Positions 15,540 through 34,586 of a DNA stretch of 64,000 nucleotides are shown here, one piece after another. A program made the position numbers and the translations under genes. Every line of letters begins with the position of its first letter. The first letter of the stretch is position 1. The notes under the pieces are model-generated. The model did no database searches. It had not been told where the DNA came from and saw only the letters and a program-made list of their open reading frames with translations. Origin of the DNA: Adineta vaga (taxonomy: Eukaryota > Animalia > Rotifera); contig CP075493.1 in NCBI GenBank assembly GCA_021613535.1, positions 2,232,001-2,296,000 on the forward strand. The letters are read 5' to 3'.

Positions 15540-18500
15540 TTATTTATTATTACTACCAGGAGGTGCTACAGCACCATTGGTTGAACCAGCTCCTGCAGTT
15601 GCAGCCGCCACTGCTGCGGCTTGTTGTTGAGCAGCAGCTAATTGAGCATAATATGCTTGATAATACAAAGCAGTCGCATCAGGCATTTGAGTTTGTTGTT
15701 GTTGAGTGTCTGGTTGTTGGACTGTTAGTTGCGGTTGTTGTTGCTGCTGTTGTTGAGCTGCTTGACTCTAGAAGAAGACGAAAAAAATCGATTTTTATTA
15801 TGAAAAGAAATAAAGTTTTTAAGGAAATTAACCATTTGAGCCGTTTTTAACCATTGTGTCCATTGTTGAGTTATGGAATTTGCATCTTGTTGTGGTTGAA
15901 TTTGTTGTTGCTGAGGTTGTTGTTGCTGTTGTTGAGTTGCTTGTGGATTGAGTGCAGCTGCATATAATGCAAACCATGAGTCGAGTGAATTAGATTGTTG
16001 AACACCGGTTGGATTGAGACCTAATGCATTTTGTGGTTGTAAAGATAAACTAGCAGCTGGATTGTTCAGAGTTGGTTGTTGAGAAGTAAATTGTTGTTGT
16101 TGATGTGATGGTGGGTTTTGCAGTAGTGGTTGCGGACGTTGTTGTTGTTGTTGTTGATTTTGAAATGGATTTTGTTGTTGCTGCTGCTGTTGCATCGATG
16201 ACTAAAATATACAATAGTCGTATCAATTTAAATAAAATATTCTTCTAGTAGAATATTCCTCTTCTGATATATGTATAGAAAAAGATGGCTGAGTTACTTA
16301 CTCGATTTCCAAATCCTTGTCGATCATGATGTTGATTAAAATTATTGTTAGTATTATTATTATTATTTTGCACATAACCACCACCACCACTACCACCTTG
16401 GTGTTGAGAACTTTTATCATAATCATTAAACTGACGACCACGTTGTTGATTATTATAATCTGATCGGAAACCACCACCACCGCCGCCACCGCTACCACCT
16501 CGTTTATTGTCATGATATGATCCTCGACTATTAAATTGATTTCCACCTCGAAAATCTCCACGACCACGATGACCACCACTACCGCCACCACCACCACTAC
16601 CTCCGCTCCCATAGTCATTTCTTTGTTGTCCATGGAATCCACCGCGCCATCCATCATTCGATTGATTATTATTGTAATTATTGCCACCTCTTCCATGATA
16701 ACCTCCTTCATGAAATCCACCACGTTGATTATAATTATTATTCCTTGAATCTTGTCGATAATCAGAATAACCACCACCACCGCCGCCGCCGCCACGTGAG
16801 TAACCACCGCCACGATAATTATTATTATGACCACCACCACCGCCATAGTTGTCATTACGACGTGATGATGATGAATAACGTGAATCATCGCGAGATGTTC
16901 GACGATCACGATCACGATCTCTGTCTCGACTTCCACGTTCTCGTGAACGTGATCGATTATGCCGGTCACGATCACGATCGCGATCTCGACTACCATGATC
17001 ACGATCATCATAACGATTTCGGTCATTTCGTGAGGAACGATAATCATCATGTCGATCATAACGTGACGACGATGAACGATGTTGATCATAATCTCGACGA
17101 GCTTTATCATATAATGTTTTAGCATCTTCATAAGATAATTCAGGATAGATTACATCTTCTAATGATGAACTTTTTTGTGGAAAATGAAATTTAGCTAAAT
17201 TATATAAACTGAATAGATAACCGATAAACAATAATAGTTATTTTACCTTTTGCTTCGCGAATCCATTGAGATGGTATAGAAATATTTTCAGATCTTTCAA
17301 CTTTTTCAATACGTGTTCTTAATTCTTCATCATCTGGAACAATAACAGCACCTATACGCTGATATCCAGTAAATAATCGTTGACGTTTCGACTGAGTTTC
17401 TCGACTTAGATTTATCTAAAGAAATCAATTCAATAATACAAATCAGAAAAAAAAATAATTTCTTACATGATCGATAATATAATTTCGTCGACGTTGTGCA
17501 GCTATTTCGATTAACTTTTGTAAACAAACATTAATACGTAACATTAAACTATCATTACGATCTTTGATCGTCGGTAGTTTACCATCAATCTATAAGGAAA
17601 AAGAGAGAAATCCATTATATCTATGATGATATGAACACATCTCGAACAAAATTCCTTCTCTTCGCATATCATAGAACAGTTTTCAATCAAAAGAAAAGAG
17701 ACATACCGCCATTTTACTGAGAACATATTCCACATTGATTAAATTAAAATTTTTAGTTGGATTTTCTTCAATATATTTCTTAGCCCATGTTGTTTTTCCC
17801 GATCCATTCAAACCAGATAATAAAATAACTTGACAATCACTTTTTTCTACAATTGCTTCAGATGATCGTATTCGTTCATCTAATGGAATATTTTGTAAAA
17901 ATGTATATTCATTCTTCATTTCTGACCAAGGACTCTCCTAAACGAAGAACAATCAAAACATTAGTATCAAACAATTTTGTTCTAACTTACTAGTTGTCCA
18001 AAATTACATTCAAATTTAACATTTTTAACTAAAATATGAGGATAAAATACCAAACGATTTTCATTATTTTCATCCGAAAAATTCTTTCTATCGACTTCAA
18101 ATGCTTGACCATAATCTTGTCCATTTTTAGTAAATGATATACGAATTTTAACCTCCTCTTCTTCATTACCATCAAAATCAATATAACATCCAAGAATATC
18201 TGACAGACCAAATGATTCTCCATATGTATCTTCAGATAATTCATCATTTAATTTACTCATCTTCTTTCCACCATATGTATATGCAAAAGAATCATTAAAT
18301 TCACCTATATGAAATACATTTCATTTCAATAATAAAACTTGATCGCATTTCTTACCTAATTGTAGTGTATGAAGACCAGAATATAAATTTGACCATCCAA
18401 CACGAATACCAAATTTCTCTTTTTCACCATCAGGCATATGTGGACAATCAATAATCTCAGTAATCTAATAAGAAAGAATACGTATGCAAATTAAAAACTA

Positions 18501-19652
18501 CACTTAGTAAAAGTACATACTCGAATCTCATAACAAATCTTTCCTCGTTTAAAACCATAAGTTGCACGTGTACCAGCCCATAAGAAACATAAAGCATCGT
18601 TAGTTTTGTTTGACGCTGATAAACAATCTGTGGCAAATGTAAGATTTAAATCAGATGTATCTATATCGAGAAAAAAATTCAACGATCAAGTAGAATGCTT
18701 GAATATATGTATCACTTACAAAAATCCAGTACAACATCCTCTGGATTAAATTGTACTATTTCTTCTTCTGGAAGTGGAATTTCTTTTTCGGATGATCTAT
18801 TTAAATCAACAGATACATAAACAATTCTATTGTTTAACAAGTATTTGTGCACATACCTTTCCGAACGTCGACTACTATAATGTCGATCATCGTCATGTCT
18901 TGATGATCGATGATGATCTCGATCTCGATGTCTACTACTACTTGTGGTACTACTATTATCAAGATTATCATCATCATCAGATGTACGTTTTGTTGTTATT
19001 TGTTTTTCTGGTGATTCGTCTTCATCTTGTTCGGAACCCCAACGACTTTTTTTCTTTCGTCGTTGTTTCGATAATTCATCGTTTTCAATATCTTCATCTT
19101 GCATTTTTTCTAATTTCGATTCTTCACCTTCATCATTTTCTTTCTCTTCTTGCTCCTCCTGCTCCTCTTCTTCTTCTTCTTCGGTTAGTCGACGTTTTTT
19201 ACTACTGGTTGTATCCATTTCTTCCGTTGGTGGATTTTCTGATTCTATAGTATTTGGAATTGGTTCTGGTAATGGTTGTTCTTGTACATCATCATCTTCG
19301 TCTTCATCTTCAATAGCCTAAATTCAAAATAAATTCAAAATACAGAAGAAAAATGAAATGGATCAACGAACACTCGATGGAGATGATGTATCATCTTTGA
19401 CAACAGGTGGAGCTGATTCTTCATCGCTAGGATCTGGATTGCCAGTTGATGTTTCACTAACTAAAACAATCAATATGAACTTATTCTTGAACGATAAATT
19501 TGATCATTCTTACCTTCAGTATTATTATTCATAGCTTCACGTAAACGTGTGATTAATTCTGCTTTTCGTCCTTTTGTGTCAAGACCACGTTTTTTCAATT
19601 CATTTTGTAATTCAGTGACTTTCAATGCTTCCAAATCTTCAGTTTCTGACAT
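15540..19652 (-). CDS. HNRNPU: hnRNP U / SAF-A (HNRNPU/HNRNPUL1 family)
   Basis: SAP domain (LKVTELQNELKKRGLDTKGRKAELITRL), an acidic linker, SPRY domain (LWAGTRATYG...RVGWS), P-loop NTPase (GLNGSGKTTWA), and RD-, RGG- and Q-rich C-terminal regions. Many short introns; the last exon ends ...VAPPGSNNK*. Confidence 0.92.
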
Positions 19653-20511
19653 CTAAAATTAATCGATTTTTTACTTCAAATTAAGCCAGCTAGATGAAAG
19701 AAATGAAGAAAACAAAACAAATTTTTTCTTTCTTTCTTTCAACGTTGGTGCACTCCTTTGTTTGATCGACAATCGCATGAACCAATCCAATATCAAAGTA
19801 TAGAGGGCACCACAATACAGATCATTTCGTCTAAAATTTTAAATCGAAGGTTTTTTTTGATGTCGATGTATATATGTATGTCATATGCTATATGGATCTA
19901 CAAGACGATGTTTTCCACTACAGCTTTTGTATCATTATTGAATATATTCAACGATGAAATCTATTCATGAAATTTGGTTTTACAAAACGATATTAACTAT
20001 TTAATTCGTGTAGCAATTATACTGACTCAATTGAATTTATCTATTGAAAATAATGACTTTTTTCTTTTACTCTTCAGACAATCGTCATTCTATTGTTATT
20101 TATATTCAATATTCTAATTATATGATCTCCCTTTCCATGGATTCCTTAGTAATAATAATAATAAAAATGGGTCGTCATATCTCTTGATAGATTATCATAT
20201 ATGTCTCTTAGATAAAATTATTATAATCACTTATTTCTCCTTATAATAAAAAATAGTCTATTTTAATCCTTCTTGTTTCTAAGTGACACTTCACTTTTGC
20301 TTATTTTCTTTTTTAGAAATGCACTCAAAATGAAATCGTTGATATTCTTATCATGTTTTTCGTTTACTTAATTATCTAAACAACCTAGAAATGATTCTAT
20401 TTCTTCTATTCAATTCACATGAGATTTCTCTTAAGATATGAACTCATATTCTTCATTTTCTTTTTATTAATCATTGACGACTGTATACGAATAACGATCT
20501 AGATTAAAACT

Positions 20512-21831
20512 ATGTCAGAAACATTTTGTGAAAAATTTAACCGACATTTTTCATTGATAGTCTATGCCTTTAGTCCATCTCATATTAAAGATGTTTTTAT
20601 CAGTATGGCAACAACCTATGAAAGTAAAGTTCATCAATTAATTGTTCTCTCTAATAGTGTTAATTTCTTTTGATTAGCACCAAAAATTATATCAATTACT
20701 TCATTACCAATTGCAATTACTTGTCGTATTGTACAATTACTTATTTTAATCTATGCATTTGCTTATATTTTATGGTATAAACGTGGTTATCAAGATCGTG
20801 ATGCATCATTATTATCATCTGTAACACTTGAAGCAAATGGAATTGGTGTTTATATGAGTCATCCGCAAATGACAGTAGATAATGCGGATTATGTAGTTCC
20901 ACCCGAAGAAAATAATGCTCTATTTATTATGACAAATTATATTCAAACAGATCAACAACGAGGTTTGTGTGCTGAAGGAACGGACATTCGAGATTCCAAC
21001 TGTAATGTTGATTCGGAATGTGAAATTAAACGTAAAAATCGTATCATATGGAGTGGACGTTGGACAGGTAAATGTCGTCAACCTGAAGGTCGATGTGAAA
21101 TGGAAGGTTGGTGTCCTGTTGAAAATGATACCGTCATACCTAAACCAATTATTGGTACATTAAATTATACAATACATCTGAAAAATTTTATTGAATTTAC
21201 ACGTTTTAGTATTACACGAAGAAATATTCTTAATGATACAAGTTATTTTCGTACATGTATTTATCATCCAATTCATGATAAACTTTGTCCAATATTTCGT
21301 ATTGATGATATATTGAATATGGTTGAAGATGATGAAGAAGAACGGGAAAAAATGTTAATGAATGGTGCTGTTTTACGTATTAAAATTGATTGGATGTGTA
21401 ATTTAGATTTAGGTGAACAAGAATGTAAACCATGTTATTCATTTGGTCGATTAGATAGTCGATCGAAAGATGAACATTTTTCTTTTGGTTTTAATTTTCG
21501 TCATGCATCACATTGGAGAGTAAATAAAACATCCTATCGAACATTGCAAAAAGCATTTGGATTGAGATTTATCGTTTCTGTGAATGGTGATGCAGGAAAA
21601 TTTAGTTTATTAGTTTTAACATTAAATATTGGTTCAATTATTGGTGTACTTGGTTTAGCAACATTTATTTGTGATATTGTTGCATTATATTTTAGTGAAC
21701 AAGGTTATATTTATCGACGACAAAAGTTTCAATCAGTTCATTTGAAAACTATATCAATTAATTCATCATTTTCAACACCATCTTCCCTGCATAAGAGAAA
21801 AATGGCAAGAAAAATAAAACGACGAACATAA
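20512..21831 (+). CDS. P2RX: P2X purinoceptor-family trimeric ion channel
   Basis: Exon 20512-20623 plus exon 20678-21831. Motifs: YETPK, TM1 followed by KRGYQ, DYVVPPEE, CEMEGWCPVE, LCPIFRIDDI, WMCNLD, GFNFRHA, RTLQKAFGLRF, TM2 GSIIGVLGLATFICD, and YRRQK (YxxxK). Confidence 0.95.
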
Positions 21832-21941
21832 ATTCATATAACTCTTCATATGAGTACAAAAGAAAAAACTCGATTTTGTTTTTGCGAAGATAAAAGTCAT
21901 TTTCATAATAAAAGTCAATTGATTTGGCGCTAAATCAATCG

Positions 21942-23552
21942 ATGATGCATCGTTCATTACAAGAATTACTTCTGAATGATTATCTTGATTTTGATAATCA
22001 TACAAATGATGATGATATTTCCATATCATTTGATAATGAACGACATATACGTTATAATATAATTCATAATGAAAAATCTAATCGAGAATATTTTCGAAAA
22101 CTAATTCATCATCGAATTTATGATTATTTCATGGCATTTGTTGTTATATCATGTTCAATTACACTTGGATTAAGTTTAGAAACCGATAATGAATATATTC
22201 GAAATGAATATCGACAAAAATTTATTTATATTCTTGATGAAATTTTAATTGCAATACTTTTTGTCGAATTTATTATAAAATTATATTTAGAATCCAATCA
22301 TTATTGGCAAAATTGGACAAATATTTATGATTTTACAATTATTCTTTTTGGTTGTATTGAAATTTTTTGGAGTTTATTCTTTCAAAAATATAATTCAACT
22401 ATTACAAACTTACTCAAAGGTTTTCGTTTATTACAATTAATACGTTTATATCGAATCATTAAATTTTCTGAAGGTTTACAAGTATTAACAAAAGCATTAA
22501 TTAAAACTGTAATAACATACACATTCAGTGTTGGAATATTAGTTTTTCTTTTAATTTATGTCATTGCAGTTATTGGACAAATGCTCTACGGTAAATCAGA
22601 AGATAGGTAAATTTAATAGTGTTTTATTGTATTTTAAGAGAGTGCAGATATCGATTTTTAAATAACTTCGAACCCTTTTAGTTTTGTTTAGTCCATGGCA
22701 TCAGTTTTCTACATCATTAACTGTTGTAACAAGATTAATTTTTGTTGATAATTGGAATTTAATTGGACCAGATCTTGAAGAAAATGGTAGTCCACCTATA
22801 TCACGATGGTTTCTAGTAATTATTGTTTTTATTGGTAATCGAATTGTTACGAATGTACTTGTTGGAATTATGATTGAAAGTGTTTCATCAGTTAATGAAG
22901 ATTATATGAAAGAAAAACGCGAGAAGAAAGTTTTACGTAATCAACAAAAACGTGAAGAATTAAGTAAACGTATGAGAAAATTAGAAAGACAGACATTCTT
23001 TTCTTTTTTTTCCTATAAGTTTAACAATTTGAATTATTGTTTAGGAACAATTCAAGTCTTAAATACACGTTCTTCCGATACGAATAATAAAATAAATAGA
23101 ACAGAAAATACAATTGAACAAATTAAATCGAAATTAAAATTAATTCAAAATGAAACAATTTCACCGAAAGATTTTATCTTTTCCATTGATTGGTTAGACA
23201 AATTAATCACATGCAGGTAATAATCTATCATCATATTCATAAATCAAAAATGATTATATTTATTGACATTTCTCTAATTCAATGAATTTATTCTGTCTGA
23301 ATTGATAAAACTAAATAGAATTAATTGAATTAGTTTTAGAAAAAGTGCAAAGGTCTTCTTCTTTTTTTTTAGGTAGGAAATTAACGATCATAATTCTATT
23401 CTTATCGGTAAATTTCTAGTGAAAAATCTCAAATTGAAGCTCAATCAGTTCGTCATCTACTTATTCATCTTGTTCAATCATTATCGGATATAACTGAAGA
23501 AAATATGCGAAGATTTCGACATGAACAACATCACATTAGTTTAAACGAATGA
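21942..23552 (+). CDS. CATSPER3: CatSper3-like single-domain 6TM cation channel subunit
   Basis: Exons 21942-22606, 22692-22969, 23045-23216 and 23420-23552 join in frame. S1-S6 are present with a basic S4 (KGFRLLQLIRLYRIIK), pore FVDNW, S6 TNVLVGIMI and a C-terminal coiled coil. KLYLESNHYWQNWTNIYD and FSEGLQVLTKALIKTV parallel recalled CatSper3 segments (KVYVDPINYWKNGYNLLD; YSQGIRTLITAVGQTV). AATAAA follows the stop. Confidence 0.78.
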
Positions 23553-23590
23553 ATAAAGAAAATGACAAGATAAAAACAAATAAAATCAGT

Positions 23591-25692
23591 TCATTTTTCT
23601 ACTAAAGTATGCCATCGTGTAATTGTTTCACCTTTTGCTGCAAGCATTGCTTCCCAATGTGAACTTTGACCAGCACCAGTCGCATTATGACCTAAATAAG
23701 AAAAAGTTAACTCTATAGTCGAATGGATTGAGTAGAATAATTCTCTACCAAACGAAATCGAACCAAAATCTTGATCAATTGAATTAATTGCTTTTTTATT
23801 CAGAACAATTATCACAATTGTAATTTGTTCGAGAAAACTTTCTTGAATATTAAATGGATAACGTTCAGCAAAGATTGGATGATATTGTACATGTCGTATA
23901 ATTGTTTCATTTGTTGTTATAGTTTCTCCAGCTGTATTTCTTAGTAAGATTTGTACAGAAGTATCTAAAGAAAATTCATCAAACTGATTTATATTGTTCA
24001 TCATCATTATGACAACTTTTACCAGGTGCTCGACCATGTGTGGCTATTCCGAAATTAATTCCTTTTCCAATTTCAAGAATAAGCATCGATTGATTTCGAT
24101 CATAAGCTAGACCAATTTCTAATTCAGGTACAAGTGAATTCATAGATTTATCACCATTACGAATCAAAGAATTCTGTCGTGAATGAGAAGCACTACTTCC
24201 ATAAGAACGACTGCCAATATCCGAATCTTGTGAAGGCTAAAAATATGAGAAATTGATTATGATTATTACATCTATTATATACTAACATAAGCTCGTTCTA
24301 AAGGAACAATTTTACACATATCTTCATCGAGATTAACCATGGCAAACATAACTGTTGCTTCCGCCAGAAGTTTTTCACGTTTAAATCGTTCATATGTATA
24401 CAAACGAAATCGAATACCTTGGGTTTGAATAGTTTCTAAGAAATAAAAAGCAATGAAATGAAAGAAGAAACAACAACACAAGTTTCAAGAGAACACAAAC
24501 CAGATGAAACTTTGCAAAAGAATTCTTCAGCAAACATTGCATTATCAATAGGTTTAACACGTGTACGAAATCGGATACGTTTATTTGGTAGAAGAGTTAA
24601 ATGTACTTGAACAAGAGTTTGTTTCGATGAATTTTGAGTCATTTCTAAATTTGCTTTGATAACAAAGACCCACATTCGACTATTTTTTGCATCAAGTTTT
24701 AATCGAACTTCTAATGTTCCCCAGGAGAAACTATTCCATGGGCCATTTGCTGTTAATGAAGAATATTCACTCGAAGCAGATTTTGTATCCTAAATCAAGT
24801 AGAAAAATATCATTTTATTCTCTAAATCATTCAATTGGAAAATTTCTCATCATTTTGTACAAATTAACCGATATTCATTCATTATTACAAATATTTTCTC
24901 TCGGAAAAAGTTCATAAAACATCTTTATAATCTTGAAATGAATAAGTCTTCTTCTTACAATAGTTTTTTCCATGAACATGTGCATTAAAGTGCATCTAGT
25001 GACATGTATTATCGAGGGAAAAAAACGGTTTCTCTTGTGACATTATAGATGATGATCTACATGAATTCTAATAGAACTTTTTTTACTAGACCGAATATAG
25101 TATTCATCGCTGAAAGTTGTCATACCATACGATCTATTGGATATATTTATCTAAAAATAACCTCCATTCTTTTCTCTAAACTTCATTATTCTTGATGAGC
25201 TATGATATTCAAAACAGCACTTGAAATATTGTACTCATAATTATATCTAAGTGTTACCATAACAAAATCTTTTTCTTCTCTAAAAATTTTAGTTTAACAA
25301 AAACCGTACGATATCAGCTGGATCCATGGAAATATGATGACGACTTTTTCTCGATTTAACATTATGATTTAAAGATGGTGATGCAGGTGCTGAACATGTT
25401 TGATCAATAGAATCATTGTCAGTTGTTGAATTTCGTCTAGTTATTGCCATAATCGTTGTTCTTTGTCGATCGATATGTTTTCTAGCTAACGAATCCACTA
25501 AAATATCAAGAAAGAAATCTATACAACACGTTTCTTGAATGTTTTCTTATCTAAAACCTTTTTTTTCTACGGATTCATTTTCCTTATTTTCAATAATAAT
25601 TGGTATTTGAGTAGAATTTCGATTGTTTACATTGGGTGTTTTTGCTAGTGGCATTAATGTTCTATAATCATCATCAGGTAATTCTGTTCCAG
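23591..25692 (-). CDS. SYT14: Synaptotagmin-14/16-like tandem C2 protein (5' end uncertain)
   Basis: C2A: QVHLTLLPNKRIRFRTRVKP...FAEEF and IRFRLY. C2B: VPELEIGLAY...GRAPDTSVQILL. The C-terminal HWEAMLAAKGETITRWHTLVEK matches the SYT14/16 pattern. Multiple short introns; the start exon was not resolved. Confidence 0.82.
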
Positions 25693-27410
25693 CTAAAAAG
25701 AAAAAAAAACGACATATTTTTTTTGGACATTTCTATTAATATAAAGATTAAAGATAAACATATTCAATTTTGTATTCTATTGTTTATTAAAATTCGAATC
25801 TTTGCTCATTATTCAGTTGCGACAAGTTAGATTTTCAACTTACAAAAAAACGGATAATAACACATGTTTTCTGCGTATTAATATTGAATAGATTAACCAC
25901 AAATATGTATTTAAATGGTTTCTTTCATTGATCTCTGTGAAAGTTTTTCTATGAAATAAATAGTATAAATATCTGATGAGTATGTTCAAACCGACTTACA
26001 TAGCGTGTTTGTTAAAATAGATATTTGAAACAAATTTGTTAATGATTGAATCTGAAGATTAATAAAAATGACGAATAAAAAAACCTATTCAAGCAAAAAA
26101 TAAGTTAATATTGTATTTTTCTTGAATATTAATCAAACTAAAAAGAAATTACTTTTTTTTTCACTTATTAGAAAATTCTACATAAAAGGAAAAAAAAGAA
26201 GAATATGCAGTTCACACACACATACACATACTAAATGTAGAAAAAGAAAGAAATTGACTTAAGTGTATCATGCTTTGAAATTATTCATGAATTAGATATA
26301 GGAAATGAGAAAGAGAAAAAGGAGAGAAAAGTAAAGATAGATAGACTTGTATAGAGTTCTGTTTTTCCTATTTCTTCTTTGTTTATCAGCAACAAAGACG
26401 AAGAAAAAAACAGAGAATGAGACTAGAAAGCTCACAAATTACACTAAACTATAGGAGAGATGTAGTCAACTTATGACAGATACTGTTAGGAAAAAAAAAG
26501 ATGAGTGTAATGGAGCGACTAATAAATGAAAATAGAAGACGAACTCTTATTCAAAATCATAATAAAGAAAAACACTATTAATAAACCGATCAACAGGATT
26601 AAAGAAAGTCTTTTCACGAATTTTAAGAATTAGATTTTCTAATGACTAACTTGAGCATTCACAAAAGCTATGTTTATATATTTGCTTTGAAAAAGTTTAT
26701 TTTCGACAATAATTATATTGCAAAATTTGTAATCATTGATGATTTTATGCGGATTGTAATTTGGAATAATGAAAGATTGTTTTATACTGTTATAAGATAT
26801 ATCAAACAAAATCCGACAAGGTCTTTTTATTTTATTTCATAATGAATCTTTTTCTTGCCCTGAAAAGATTTGTAAGTATTTATTAGTCGATTATTGATTC
26901 ATAAATCCGGTTGACATCATCATCATATATAAATATTAATTCTTTTTTTGTGACACGTAAAGGTTAGTTTATCATGCCGGATTATACTTATGTTTCTAGG
27001 GTTGAGCTTTTCAGTTCTCGAGAAAAGAAATCAAGATTATGTTAATCAGAATTTGATAATCAATTTCTATGTTTTACAGATCATCTTTATATGATATGAT
27101 GGATTCAACTGTAAAGAAAAGCGTTAATGAGTAAATAGAATCATACAAAAGAATGAGAAACTCAACTAGGTGTATTATTATTCATAACAAAAAAGGAGTA
27201 GTTAAACACACTCGTCGTTTGAACTAATTTAGTGTTGATGTTTATTCTTGTATGAAGAATTTTTTTGATCGAATTCCTAATAGAATCATTTTTCACAAGA
27301 GACTAAACAATAATATTTGCTAATTTTATCTATGATGATGATGATAATAGATTTTTTTTTCTATCAGAACAAACAAACAAACAGACAGAGGAAAAAGAAA
27401 TTCATATTGA

Positions 27411-28255
27411 CTACATTTTTGATAGCAGATCAATTTTAACAATTTATTCATGTAAAGAACGTATTTACATACTTTGTGCTGGTGGTAATTGAGCTAATTG
27501 TGCATCATCTAATTGTAATAGAAGTAAAGCAGCATTCTCATCAAGATTGGGAGCACGTATCGGTGGTGCTAAAGGATTGAGTTGAGGTTGAAATGAAGGT
27601 TGAACAGGTGGTAGAAGTAATAGACCAGGAAACATGCCAGCACCGGAAAGTAGAGCAGCTTGGAAAAGAGCAGCAGCTGCAGCTTGTTGAGCATTAGCAG
27701 GATTAGAAGGTATCATTGGCATTGAAAATGGTACACCAGGAATAACTGGAAATGGAAATGGACCAGCTGCATTGCCTCCCACAGGAAGAGGAAATGAAAC
27801 AGTGACTACTGCTGTTGGTTATGTCGTTGTTGTAAGTAGTTTTTTTTCAATATCTGCAGGTGCCGGAATGATATCTTTATCAGCACGATTAAGTAATGCC
27901 ATAGCGACTTGAGGATCGACAATTCTCATGACAACTTGAGCTTGTAAAAGTGCATAAGCTAATTGAGGATTAGTTGATAGAAGTGTTTTAGCTTCGTTTG
28001 GATTGGCTTCAATACATTGTTTCATTTGTTTCATCAATTCAAACATCTATTATAAAAACAATCAAATAATTCTTATTCATTTGACATGAGGGAATCTATG
28101 TAAGAATAAATTAGTCTTCGTTCTTTCCTATGTCTATAACAGTAGATGTCGAAAGGTCTCAATTAGTGCATAACTTCTTCGATATTCTTTCACCGAGTGA
28201 ATTTACGAATCTGGGCTGGTGGTAAAGACGCCACAGCATTAGAAATTGATTCACG
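27411..28255 (-). pseudogene. Partial, disabled duplicate of CstF-64 (hinge and C-terminal domain, no RRM)
   Basis: Aligns to 33173-34042, intron included. Lesions: splice donor GT>AT at 28210-28209, a 1-nt frameshift near 27850, a 27-nt deletion, and CAA>TAA at 27467-27465. Downstream flank similarity extends to about 26890. Confidence 0.9.
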
Positions 28256-33172: not shown

Positions 33173-34586
33173 CTACATTTTTGGTAATAGACCGGTTTTA
33201 GCAATTTGTTCACGTAAAGAACGAATTTGCATACTTTGTGCTGGTGGTAATTGAGCTAATTGTGCATCATCTAATTGTAATAGAAGTAAAGCAGCATTCT
33301 CATCAAGATTGGGAGCACGTATTGGTGGTGCTAAAGGATTGAGTTGAGGTTGAAATGAAGGTTGAACAGGCGGAAATGGTGTGACATGTGGCATAGGTGG
33401 TGGAATTAATGAGCCAGGAAACATGCCAGCGCCCGAAAGAAGAGCTGCTTGAAAAAGAGCAGCGGCTGCAGCTTGTTGAGCATTAGCAGGATTAGACGGT
33501 ATCATTGGCATTGAAAATGGTACACCAGGAATAACTGGAAATGGAAATGGACCAGCTGCATTGCCTCCCACAGGATGAGGAAGTGGAGCAGTGACTGATG
33601 TTGTTGATTGTGTCGTTGTTGTAAGTAGTTTTTTCATATCTGCAGGTGCAGGAATGATATCTTTATCAGCACGATTAAGTAATGCCATAGCGACTTGAGG
33701 ATCGACAATTCTCATGACAACTTGAGCTTGTAAAAGTGCATAAGCTAATTGAGGATTAGTTGATAGAAGTGTTTTAGCTTCGTTTGGATTGGCTTCAATA
33801 CATTGTTTCATTTGTTTCATCAATTCAAACATCTATTATAAAAACAATCAAATAATTCTTATTCATTTGACATAAGAGAATCTATGTAAGAATAAATTAT
33901 TCTTCGTTCTTTCCTATGTCTATAACAGTAGATGTCGAAAGATCTCAATTAGTTATAACTTCTTCGATATTCTTTCACCGAGTGAATTTACGAACCTGGG
34001 CTGGTGGTAAAGACGCAACAGCATTAGAAATTGATTCACGTTCTTCTTTATTATTAGAATTAGCACTCGTGGTTGTCGAAGTATTTGGTGATTCCATTGT
34101 TGAAGTAGATGCTGATGGTTGTGATGCTGTTGCATTTGCTAGACGAGGATCATTCTTATTCAATGATGTAACAGTCGTTGTTGTTGTTGTACATAATTGT
34201 TCAAATAAATTTATAATTGGTTCAGCTTGATTCGAAAGTAGATCAACAACAAGACGAAAGTCACCAAGATCAAGACCATTCAATCTATTGATAACTGTTT
34301 GAGCAATTTCATTCGATGCAAACTAAAATCATGAAGATTCCATAAAATGAAACACAACCTATGTCAAAATAACAAATAAACTTACTTCAGCAAAAGCATA
34401 ACCTCTAGCTGTTTGTGCATTGGAATCATTCGTATTATTTGTTCCCGAAGGATCAAGAAACATATGAAAATGAATAAGTACTCCAAATTGACTTAACATT
34501 TGTCGAAAAAGATCTTCTGTTATACCAGCTGGTATATTTTGTACAAATATAGAACGCAAATATCGTTCAATATGTGCTGGTGGCAT
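33173..34586 (-). CDS. CSTF2: Cleavage stimulation factor 64 kDa subunit (CstF-64)
   Basis: Exons 34586-34386, 34322-33996 and 33832-33173. RRM (RSIFVQNIP...RGYAFAEF), hinge domain (ISNAVASLPPAQMFELMKQMK...NPQLAYALLQAQVVMRIVDP) and C-terminal domain (QLAQLPPAQSMQIRSLREQI). Confidence 0.93.

Follow-up and report, generated by a model that had tools for sequence, protein, structure and literature searches.

The locus described here resembles two kinds of known systems, the spliced-leader operons of nematodes, tunicates and chaetognaths, and the conserved microsynteny of compact bdelloid rotifer genomes (Nowell et al. 2018, PMC5916493). According to a passage of PMC1925144 that cites Pouchkina-Stantcheva and Tunnacliffe 2005, trans-splicing affects over half of bdelloid mRNAs. 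Rotifers have no reported operons (PMC7986045), our literature search found no report of polycistronic transcripts in Adineta, and in chaetognaths, the nearest group studied, operons are depleted of signalling and nervous-system genes (PMC12460157). The intergenic distance in Adineta vaga has a median of 0.8 kb and a mean of 1.4 kb (PMC5916493, Table 1), which makes 110 nt a short gap; by our rough estimate, about one in ten gene pairs may lie as close together as 110 nt, and in the annotated bdelloid loci that we examined, 4 of 11 CDS-to-CDS gaps were shorter than 250 nt.

The window analysed is a stretch of 64,000 nucleotides from chromosome 1 of A. vaga, in which a sequence-only reading had singled out a P2X receptor gene, a CatSper3-like channel gene and a synaptotagmin-14/16-like gene as a compact and possibly co-transcribed module of membrane and Ca2+ signalling. 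The identities of the three genes and most of their geometry were borne out, whereas the proposed module was not: the three are probably separate, intact and selectively constrained genes that belong to an ancient stretch of conserved gene order within a compact genome, and not a dedicated co-transcribed unit. The features are compiled in Table 1.

Table 1 Features of the P2X–CatSper3-like–SYT14/16-like locus, in positions of the window.
Feature	Position	Strand	Basis or details
hnRNPU-like gene, upstream neighbour, divergent from P2X	16416..19652	-	tblastn of Rotaria sp. Silwood1 upstream gene against the window
P2X receptor gene, 421 aa	20512..21831	+	exons 20512-20623, 20678-21831; ATG 20512, TAA ending 21831
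P2X codons E-A-N replacing the K-x-K ATP-binding lysines	20830..20838	+	HMMER alignment to P2X4
P2X-to-CatSper3 intergenic stretch, 110-113 nt	21832..21944	+	AATAAA 21907-21912, AG 21913-21914, TGGCGC box 21925-21930
CatSper3-like single-repeat 6-TM cation channel gene, 414 aa	21945..23552	+	exons 21945-22606, 22692-22969, 23045-23216, 23420-23552
Gap between convergent stops, 38 nt	23553..23590	.	AATAAA at 23552-23557 overlaps the CatSper stop
Synaptotagmin-14/16-like double-C2 gene, ~438 aa	23591..25865	-	stop codon 23591-23593
SYT14/16-like exons	25865-25844, 25692-25558, 25497-25310, 24789-24501, 24435-24287, 24236-24023, 23964-23749, 23691-23591	-	
CSTF2-like gene, downstream neighbour	27414..28046	-	tblastn of Rotaria downstream gene against the window; second copy 33176-34586

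The P2X and CatSper3-like genes lie on the same strand, and the gap between them depends on which of the tandem ATGs at 21942 and 21945 is taken as the start of the latter; the second is the start in the NCBI model and in all orthologues. The SYT14/16-like gene converges on the CatSper3-like gene, as had been read from the sequence. The span assigned to the trio, 20512-25692, was right at its P2X end, but 25692 marks an exon boundary inside the SYT14/16-like gene and not its start, since the ATG of this gene is located at 25865 within a 22-nt first exon. Spliced models were searched exon by exon or via the database proteins P0088 and P0029, and joined coding sequences were used for local model checks only. 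The four-exon CatSper3-like model translates exactly to P0088 (NCBI I4U23_000629, Adineta vaga), the splice join of the P2X gene re-forms the canonical YETPK motif, and the SYT14/16-like model, which has GT-AG boundaries at every intron, aligns over its full length with P0029, the protein of a spliced transcript. For the neighbours, the domains SAP, SPRY and AAA_33 (hnRNPU-like) are Pfam labels on orthologous genes, with a SAP-motif ORF at 19470-19652 in the window itself, and CSTF2_hinge and RRM are Pfam labels at the orthologous loci. An Rfam scan of 19500-27000 gave no matches.

Similarity scores and cluster matches support CatSper3 as the closest characterised relative of the predicted channel. 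Mouse CatSper3 (7eeb_C) was the top single-repeat PDB match with 81.7 bits over one stretch (residues 40-398), and NaChBac (45 bits) and CatSper1 (41 bits) matched more weakly; four-repeat channels reached higher whole-chain totals, which in most cases were summed from more than one matched stretch. In the ESM-Atlas, CatSper3 clusters made up 20 of the nearest 30 matches, with a top score of 0.96, and the Pfam domain Ion_trans was found in the protein. Like mammalian CatSper3 (7eeb chain C), the bdelloid protein of about 400 aa has a single 6-TM repeat, a charged S4 with Lys or Arg at every third position (here K-x-x-R-x-x-Q-x-x-R-x-x-R-x-x-K) and a pore with an acidic filter residue, Asp, followed by Trp, and the alignment extends through the C-terminal helical region. 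It differs from mammalian CatSper3 in its overall sequence (about 25-30% identity) and in its filter, which reads F/L-V-D-N-W; CatSper filters generally read T-x-D-x-W. The pore residues VDNW are invariant across seven bdelloid species, and the dN/dS values of the gene range from 0.05 to 0.12. Besides bdelloid sequences, two profile searches for relatives returned only a few weak matches to bacterial-type channels. Mammalian CatSper3 is a pore subunit of the sperm CatSper complex, together with CatSper1, 2 and 4 and the auxiliary subunits beta, gamma, delta and epsilon. Profile and protein searches of the genome for other CatSper subunits, which are weak for intron-split distant paralogues, retrieved the CatSper3-like gene itself and nothing else. 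The profiles of the auxiliary subunits, CATSPERB_C and Beta-prop_CATSPERD, found nothing in a six-frame search of the genome, and the control genomes were equally silent. The protein collection that we searched contained no assembled spliced CatSper3-like transcript, none of the matches of about 410 aa, the size expected of the complete spliced protein, coming from Logan run assemblies, and we found no paper linking CatSper to rotifers.

The assignment of the first gene to the P2X family was confirmed by a match to Pfam PF00864 over profile positions 6-360 of 361 (353 bits, E 1.9e-105), and its best PDB match was P2X4 (E 1.1e-74). It shares with vertebrate P2X4 and ATP-gated P2X receptors the full-length fold match, two TM segments, a cysteine-rich ectodomain and the ATP-site motifs NFR and K-x-x-G-x-R-F, and its dN/dS between A. 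vaga and A. ricciae is 0.12. Unlike these receptors, it lacks the two N-terminal ATP-binding lysines: HMMER aligned SSVTLEANG of A. vaga with SSVTTKVKG of P2X4 (chain 9bqh_A), so that the K-x-K-G motif after TM1, T-K-V-K-G in P2X4, reads L-E-A-N-G and both K67 and K69 of P2X4 are replaced. The same replacement by Glu and Asn is found in A. ricciae, and the first lysine is lost in most other CatSper-linked P2X orthologues; the ohnologue on A. vaga chromosome 4 retains KVKG. Because both conserved lysines are replaced, it is doubtful that this P2X acts as an ordinary ATP-gated Ca2+ channel, which the proposed module had taken as a premise.

For the third gene, every named non-rotifer match was synaptotagmin-14 or -16, and the identity to a mollusc SYT14-like protein was 37% across both C2 domains. 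P0029 contains two C2 stretches in the tandem C2A-C2B arrangement, and the exons taken alone score below the Pfam C2 thresholds. Synaptotagmin-14/16 are Ca2+-independent double-C2 proteins. The rotifer protein resembles them in its two C2 domains, which reach the extreme C-terminus with a WH-x-L ending, and departs from them in its short N-terminus, which starts with MCYYPFF and has no obvious transmembrane segment.

In order to assess the conservation of the trio, we compared the locus with 11 orthologous loci from other bdelloids. The gene order hnRNPU-like, P2X, CatSper3-like, SYT14-like and CSTF2 is syntenic in most of them, and the five-gene block is present in A. ricciae, Rotaria sp. Silwood1 and five metagenomic bdelloid contigs; the unrelated RNA-binding neighbours are therefore retained as well as the trio. 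The short spacing is not conserved along with the order. The distances from the P2X stop to the CatSper ATG are 59, 74, 113, 118, 166, 358, 633, 1368 and about 2610 nt, and those between the convergent CatSper and SYT stops in the other bdelloids are about 37, 51, 90, 117, 128 and 285 nt. In A. steineri, a His_Phos_2 gene takes the place of P2X upstream of the CatSper3-like gene, in Didymodactylos carnosus no SYT gene lies within 8 kb, and in Rotaria magnacalcarata the neighbours are entirely different, with neither P2X nor SYT, even though its CatSper3-like protein groups with the other Rotaria orthologues; the CatSper3-like gene is intact in all three. An ohnologous block on A. vaga chromosome 4 carries convergent P2X and SYT genes with 1.8 kb of non-coding DNA between them, in which tblastn and six-frame HMM searches found no CatSper remnant although the positive control worked. 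Sharing of P2X and SYT between chromosomes 1 and 4 with CatSper missing from one of them is as in the bdelloid ohnologous blocks with gene loss (PMC5916493), and the short intergenic distances likewise correspond to bdelloid microsynteny blocks, from which the locus differs in nothing material: the trio behaves as unrelated neighbours do and is conserved no better than these.

These data also bear on the idea that the three genes are co-regulated without being co-transcribed, a shared enhancer or chromatin domain placing them in one ciliated, sensory or gamete-like cell type for joint Ca2+ signalling. Their products are thematically similar, and the same-strand adjacency of P2X and CatSper dates to the deepest bdelloid split sampled, that of D. 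carnosus. Moreover, CatSper and a P2X2 current are reportedly both present in mouse sperm. However, the adjacency decays as ordinary synteny does, being lost in two to three lineages with the genes intact, the chromosome 4 block has no CatSper, the P2X has lost two ATP-binding lysines, and no upstream motif is common to the three genes. In addition, with eight or more P2X loci in A. vaga, a P2X gene beside another channel gene is not a rare event. We thus regard such a functional module as very unlikely, and nothing requires joint action of the three products.

The upstream motif that is conserved belongs to the CatSper3-like gene, which speaks against shared control of the trio. Nine of the 11 orthologous loci, including loci without P2X upstream, carry GGCGC at a distance of 15-40 nt upstream of the CatSper ATG, against a background chance of 1.3% per 60 nt; the longer TGGCGC occurs four times in the window. 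The box was absent before P2X in all eight loci checked and before SYT in seven of nine. With a synonymous divergence of about 1.0 between A. vaga and A. ricciae, unconstrained intergenic sequence is expected to be randomised. In most species, a TAATTA box lies shortly before the CatSper ATG. The pattern is compatible with an autonomous regulatory region of the CatSper3-like gene.

The intergenic stretch was also considered as the junction of a bicistron resolved by spliced-leader trans-splicing, in A. vaga as well as in the other lineages with a tight gap. Such an operon-like unit would yield a single primary transcript, which would be cut and given a poly(A) tail downstream of the P2X AATAAA, with the bdelloid spliced leader added to the downstream cistron. 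As in the operons of nematodes, tunicates and chaetognaths, the two genes lie about 100 nt apart on the same strand of a trans-splicing host, the gaps being 59-166 nt in A. vaga, A. ricciae and three metagenomic lineages, and the P2X poly(A) signal is near the CatSper start. In A. vaga and two of the metagenomic lineages, AATAAA occurs only once between the P2X stop and the CatSper ATG, 30-32 nt short of the latter, so that P2X transcription must enter the CatSper leader, and in A. ricciae an acceptor-like pyrimidine tract and AG abut the CatSper ATG. Against this, the stretch from the GGCGC box to the CatSper ATG contains no AG in A. vaga; the nearest one, at 21913-21914, directly follows the AATAAA and has a weak pyrimidine tract. 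Furthermore, Rotaria and Didymodactylos have gaps of 1.4-2.6 kb, and two species have lost the link altogether, which shows that the CatSper3-like gene does not depend on P2X transcription. The rotifer pair also departs from the described operons in its variable gap and, with regard to chaetognaths, in belonging to the depleted class of signalling genes. Taken together, we consider a bicistron unlikely, and we give still less credence to its extended form, in which the lysine-less P2X and the CatSper3-like channel of Adineta and other tight-gap bdelloids would derive from one trans-spliced precursor, possibly in ciliated or relict germline cells. If true, this would be a two-channel operon and the first published for the rotifer phylum; if spliced-leader operons were confirmed in A. 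vaga, the pair would make a cheap extra test case.

The AG at 21913-21914 had been put forward as the acceptor of a spliced P2X-CatSper3 fusion protein. It is indeed present, shares the reading frame of the CatSper ATG and is separated from it by nine codons without a stop. Yet the P2X frame differs from the CatSper frame, the C-terminal tails of P2X vary in length and sequence, so that no conserved donor is apparent, and in orthologues the CatSper frame is closed by stops 3-6 codons upstream of the ATG. The initiator Met is kept in 33 of 33 CatSper3-like sequences and every NCBI model shows two separate genes, which makes a fusion extremely improbable.

Under the preferred reading of three separate genes, a short promoter or leader region of its own, marked by GGCGC and mostly TAATTA, would drive the CatSper3-like gene. 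The 110-nt gap of A. vaga would be a lineage-specific compaction that pushed the 3' end of P2X against this region. Since 38 nt separate the convergent stops, the 3' UTRs of the CatSper3-like and SYT14-like genes probably abut or overlap, as is common in the A. vaga genome.

As a module, the trio matters little; it illustrates that thematic neighbours in compact genomes are easily over-read, and equally conserved unrelated neighbours serve as the negative control. What retains some interest is the CatSper3-like gene itself. It mostly lies next to a P2X paralogue that has lost ATP-binding lysines, and its conserved GGCGC and TAATTA signature may be used to find its regulator and co-regulated genes. 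It is a single-copy gene under strong purifying selection and kept in every bdelloid sampled, in a lineage in which, to our knowledge, no males are known.

The three genes for which the sequence-only reading had proposed a Ca2+ signalling module were modelled in a genome of 100.8 Mb in 6 contigs, in which the window corresponds to contig 1, 2232001-2296000, on chromosome 1 of the bdelloid rotifer Adineta vaga, and all three assignments could be confirmed. The P2X product matched Pfam PF00864 (E 1.9e-105) and P2X4 in the PDB (E 1e-74), and its splice join restored the canonical YETPK motif before TM1. The CatSper3-like product is identical to 'hypothetical protein I4U23_000629 [Adineta vaga]' (P0088, 414 aa) and matched Pfam Ion_trans. 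Mouse CatSper3 (7eeb_C) was its top match among single-repeat channels in the PDB, with 81.7 bits (query 40-398 against chain 33-382) compared to 41 bits for CatSper1 and 45 bits for NaChBac; four-repeat Nav/Cav chains reached slightly higher totals, mostly by summing more than one matched stretch. The nearest named clusters in the ESM-Atlas were likewise CatSper3 (score 0.96, 20 of 30 hits). S4 is charged, the pore motif VDNW is invariant in seven bdelloid species, and all 33 orthologous sequences start at the second of two in-frame methionines.

Features of the P2X, CatSper3-like and SYT-like genes and their surroundings in the window
Feature	Coordinates	Strand	Remark
P2X	exons 20512-20623, 20678-21831		421 aa
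E-A-N codons in P2X	20830-20838		
AATAAA, P2X-CatSper intergenic	21907-21912		
AG, P2X-CatSper intergenic	21913-21914		
TGGCGC, P2X-CatSper intergenic	21925-21930		
Additional in-frame ATG	21942		
CatSper3-like	exons 21945-22606, 22692-22969, 23045-23216, 23420-23552		translation exactly P0088
SYT-like	ATG 25865 to stop 23591-23593	minus	8 GT-AG exons
SYT-like intron in last coding part	23692-23748	minus	57 nt
Conserved sequence upstream of SYT ATG	~25870-26060	minus	several genera
CSTF2-like, two copies	27414-28046, 33176-34586	minus	~6 kb apart, downstream of SYT

Searched singly, the SYT-like exons gave no Pfam match. With the last exon as query, an exhaustive HMMER search listed rotifer homologues first, followed by proteins carrying the name synaptotagmin-14 or -16, and P0029, the protein of a related spliced rotifer transcript, has two C2 stretches and aligns with a Haliotis SYT14-like protein at 37% identity over 325 residues, reaching the very C-terminus. 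Position 25692, where the trio had been taken to end, proved to be an internal SYT exon boundary. For the SYT ohnologue, a spliced transcript from another Adineta-like species was present; in contrast, Logan run assemblies gave no CatSper3-like match of about 410 aa, the full spliced length, and every Logan match was exon-1-sized. The intron in the last coding part is in-frame and stop-free and, if retained, would add 19 residues inside C2B that are absent from the orthologues and from P0029. Upstream of the SYT ATG, a conserved AACACGC-N-GTAAGT donor-like site and a TTGACATAAATCTC-like motif suggest a candidate non-coding first exon with a 5' UTR intron.

In the alignment of the window P2X to P2X4, L-E-A-N-G lies opposite T-K-V-K-G, and thus both N-terminal ATP-binding lysines are missing, with NFR and the later lysine motifs kept. 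The CatSper-linked P2X paralogue has lost these lysines stepwise. Its motif is EAN in both A. vaga and A. ricciae; Rotaria and metagenomic lineages show AVK, EVK, DVK or QVR, and KVK is present in D. carnosus, in the metagenomic contig L025 and also in the chromosome 4 ohnologue of A. vaga. Between A. vaga and A. ricciae, dN/dS was 0.12 for P2X, 0.12 for CatSper exon 1 and 0.05 for the CatSper pore-S6 exon; both channel genes are functional, among them the lysine-less P2X, which remains under purifying selection.

The spacing of the genes was as described before: the P2X stop precedes the CatSper ATG on the same strand by 110-113 nt, depending on which of the two tandem ATGs is used, and the stops of the convergent CatSper and SYT genes are 38 nt apart. 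Genes of A. vaga are separated by 1.4 kb on average, with a median of 0.8 kb (PMC5916493), and the 110-nt gap is short yet unexceptional; by rough inference about one gene pair in ten would lie that close. With at least eight P2X loci in A. vaga, a P2X gene next to another channel gene is not improbable either. Compared over nine loci, the P2X-CatSper gap measured 59, 74, 118, 358 and 633 nt in the metagenomic contigs L020, L021, L024, L019 and L025, respectively, 113 nt in A. vaga, 166 nt in A. ricciae, 1368 nt in Rotaria sp. Silwood1 and about 2610 nt in D. carnosus; its length is not conserved among bdelloids. The CatSper-SYT stop-to-stop distances vary as well (38, ~37, 51, 90, 117, 128 and 285 nt).

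For synteny, the A. vaga exons were mapped onto orthologous loci of A. ricciae, A. steineri, Rotaria sp. Silwood1, R. magnacalcarata, Didymodactylos carnosus and five metagenomic bdelloid contigs. The gene order is kept at most loci, and the block hnRNPU-like (SAP, SPRY)-P2X-CatSper3-like-SYT14-like-CSTF2 is common to A. vaga, A. ricciae (whose short contig ends inside the SYT gene), Rotaria sp. Silwood1 and the five metagenomic contigs. The unrelated RNA-binding genes flanking the trio are therefore retained to the same degree as the trio itself. The P2X or SYT link is broken in three species, in all of which CatSper3-like is intact: a His_Phos_2 gene replaces P2X upstream in A. steineri, no SYT was found within 8 kb in D. 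carnosus, and the neighbours in R. magnacalcarata are wholly different. There (L033, 6532-11077), a prok_STING-like gene lies 339 nt upstream and CFAP298, a cilia/flagella protein gene, 325 nt downstream, both on the same strand, with Ank and ART genes farther upstream. The replacement neighbours are all absent from the 64-kb A. vaga window. The CatSper3-like sequences track species relationships in a maximum-likelihood tree, in which A. vaga and A. ricciae have A. steineri as their sister, D. carnosus is outermost, and R. magnacalcarata, on a long branch, is nested with moderate support among the Rotaria orthologues; the broken links are thus derived rearrangements of a single-copy gene. A functional module of the trio finds no support in these results, and one held together by a shared enhancer, for which the thematic similarity of the products is the sole positive point, is very unlikely. 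Because the stretch compared from Rotaria sp. Silwood1 has a single CSTF2-like copy, the two in A. vaga seem to stem from a local duplication.

On A. vaga chromosome 4, an ohnologous P2X (65% identical, KVKG intact) and SYT are convergent around 1.8 kb of non-coding sequence (L018 2125-3932; G000:C4, ~12253124-12254931; 23% GC, without ORFs), in the exact place of CatSper3-like on chromosome 1. No CatSper remnant was detectable in this gap with a working positive control, so that the gene may equally have been lost from chromosome 4 or gained on chromosome 1.

At a synonymous divergence of ~1.0, the intergenic sequences of A. vaga and A. ricciae are otherwise unalignable. Nevertheless, 9 of the 11 loci have GGCGC, usually as TGGCGC, at a distance of 15-40 nt upstream of the CatSper ATG, and in most species a TAATTA-type box comes after it; the loci without GGCGC there are D. 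carnosus (GGCGG at -50) and one contig with a degenerate form. The background chance of GGCGC is ~1.3% per 60-nt window of these loci, and TGGCGC occurs only 4 times across the 64 kb. The box travels with CatSper3-like, being present without an upstream P2X in A. steineri and R. magnacalcarata. Upstream of P2X it was absent in all eight loci checked, and upstream of SYT in seven of nine, the other two, GC-richer contigs, holding copies at other positions. We take it to resemble an E2F-type site. It may belong to an autonomous promoter or leader region and is a candidate gene-specific element.

An operon-like P2X-CatSper unit in A. vaga seems rather unlikely: the single AATAAA that follows the P2X stop lies 30 nt before the CatSper ATG, and more than half of bdelloid mRNAs are trans-spliced (PMC1925144), but there is no AG between box and ATG, the AG at 21913 is weak, and relatives can do without the gap and even without the adjacency. 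In addition, rotifers have no reported operons (PMC7986045), and those of chaetognaths are depleted of signalling genes (PMC12460157). The suggested spliced fusion through that AG is extremely unlikely, as the P2X and CatSper frames differ, orthologues carry in-frame stops 3-6 codons ahead of the CatSper ATG, the initiator methionine is conserved and the NCBI models are two separate genes.

The comparative data lend no support to co-transcription or a module, and the arrangement is an ordinary genomic one, if with some points of side interest. Judged from these comparisons, P2X, CatSper3-like and SYT are probably three independently regulated genes in an inherited order, in which compaction of the Adineta genome would have pushed the P2X 3' end up to the CatSper leader and made the convergent CatSper and SYT 3' UTRs abut.
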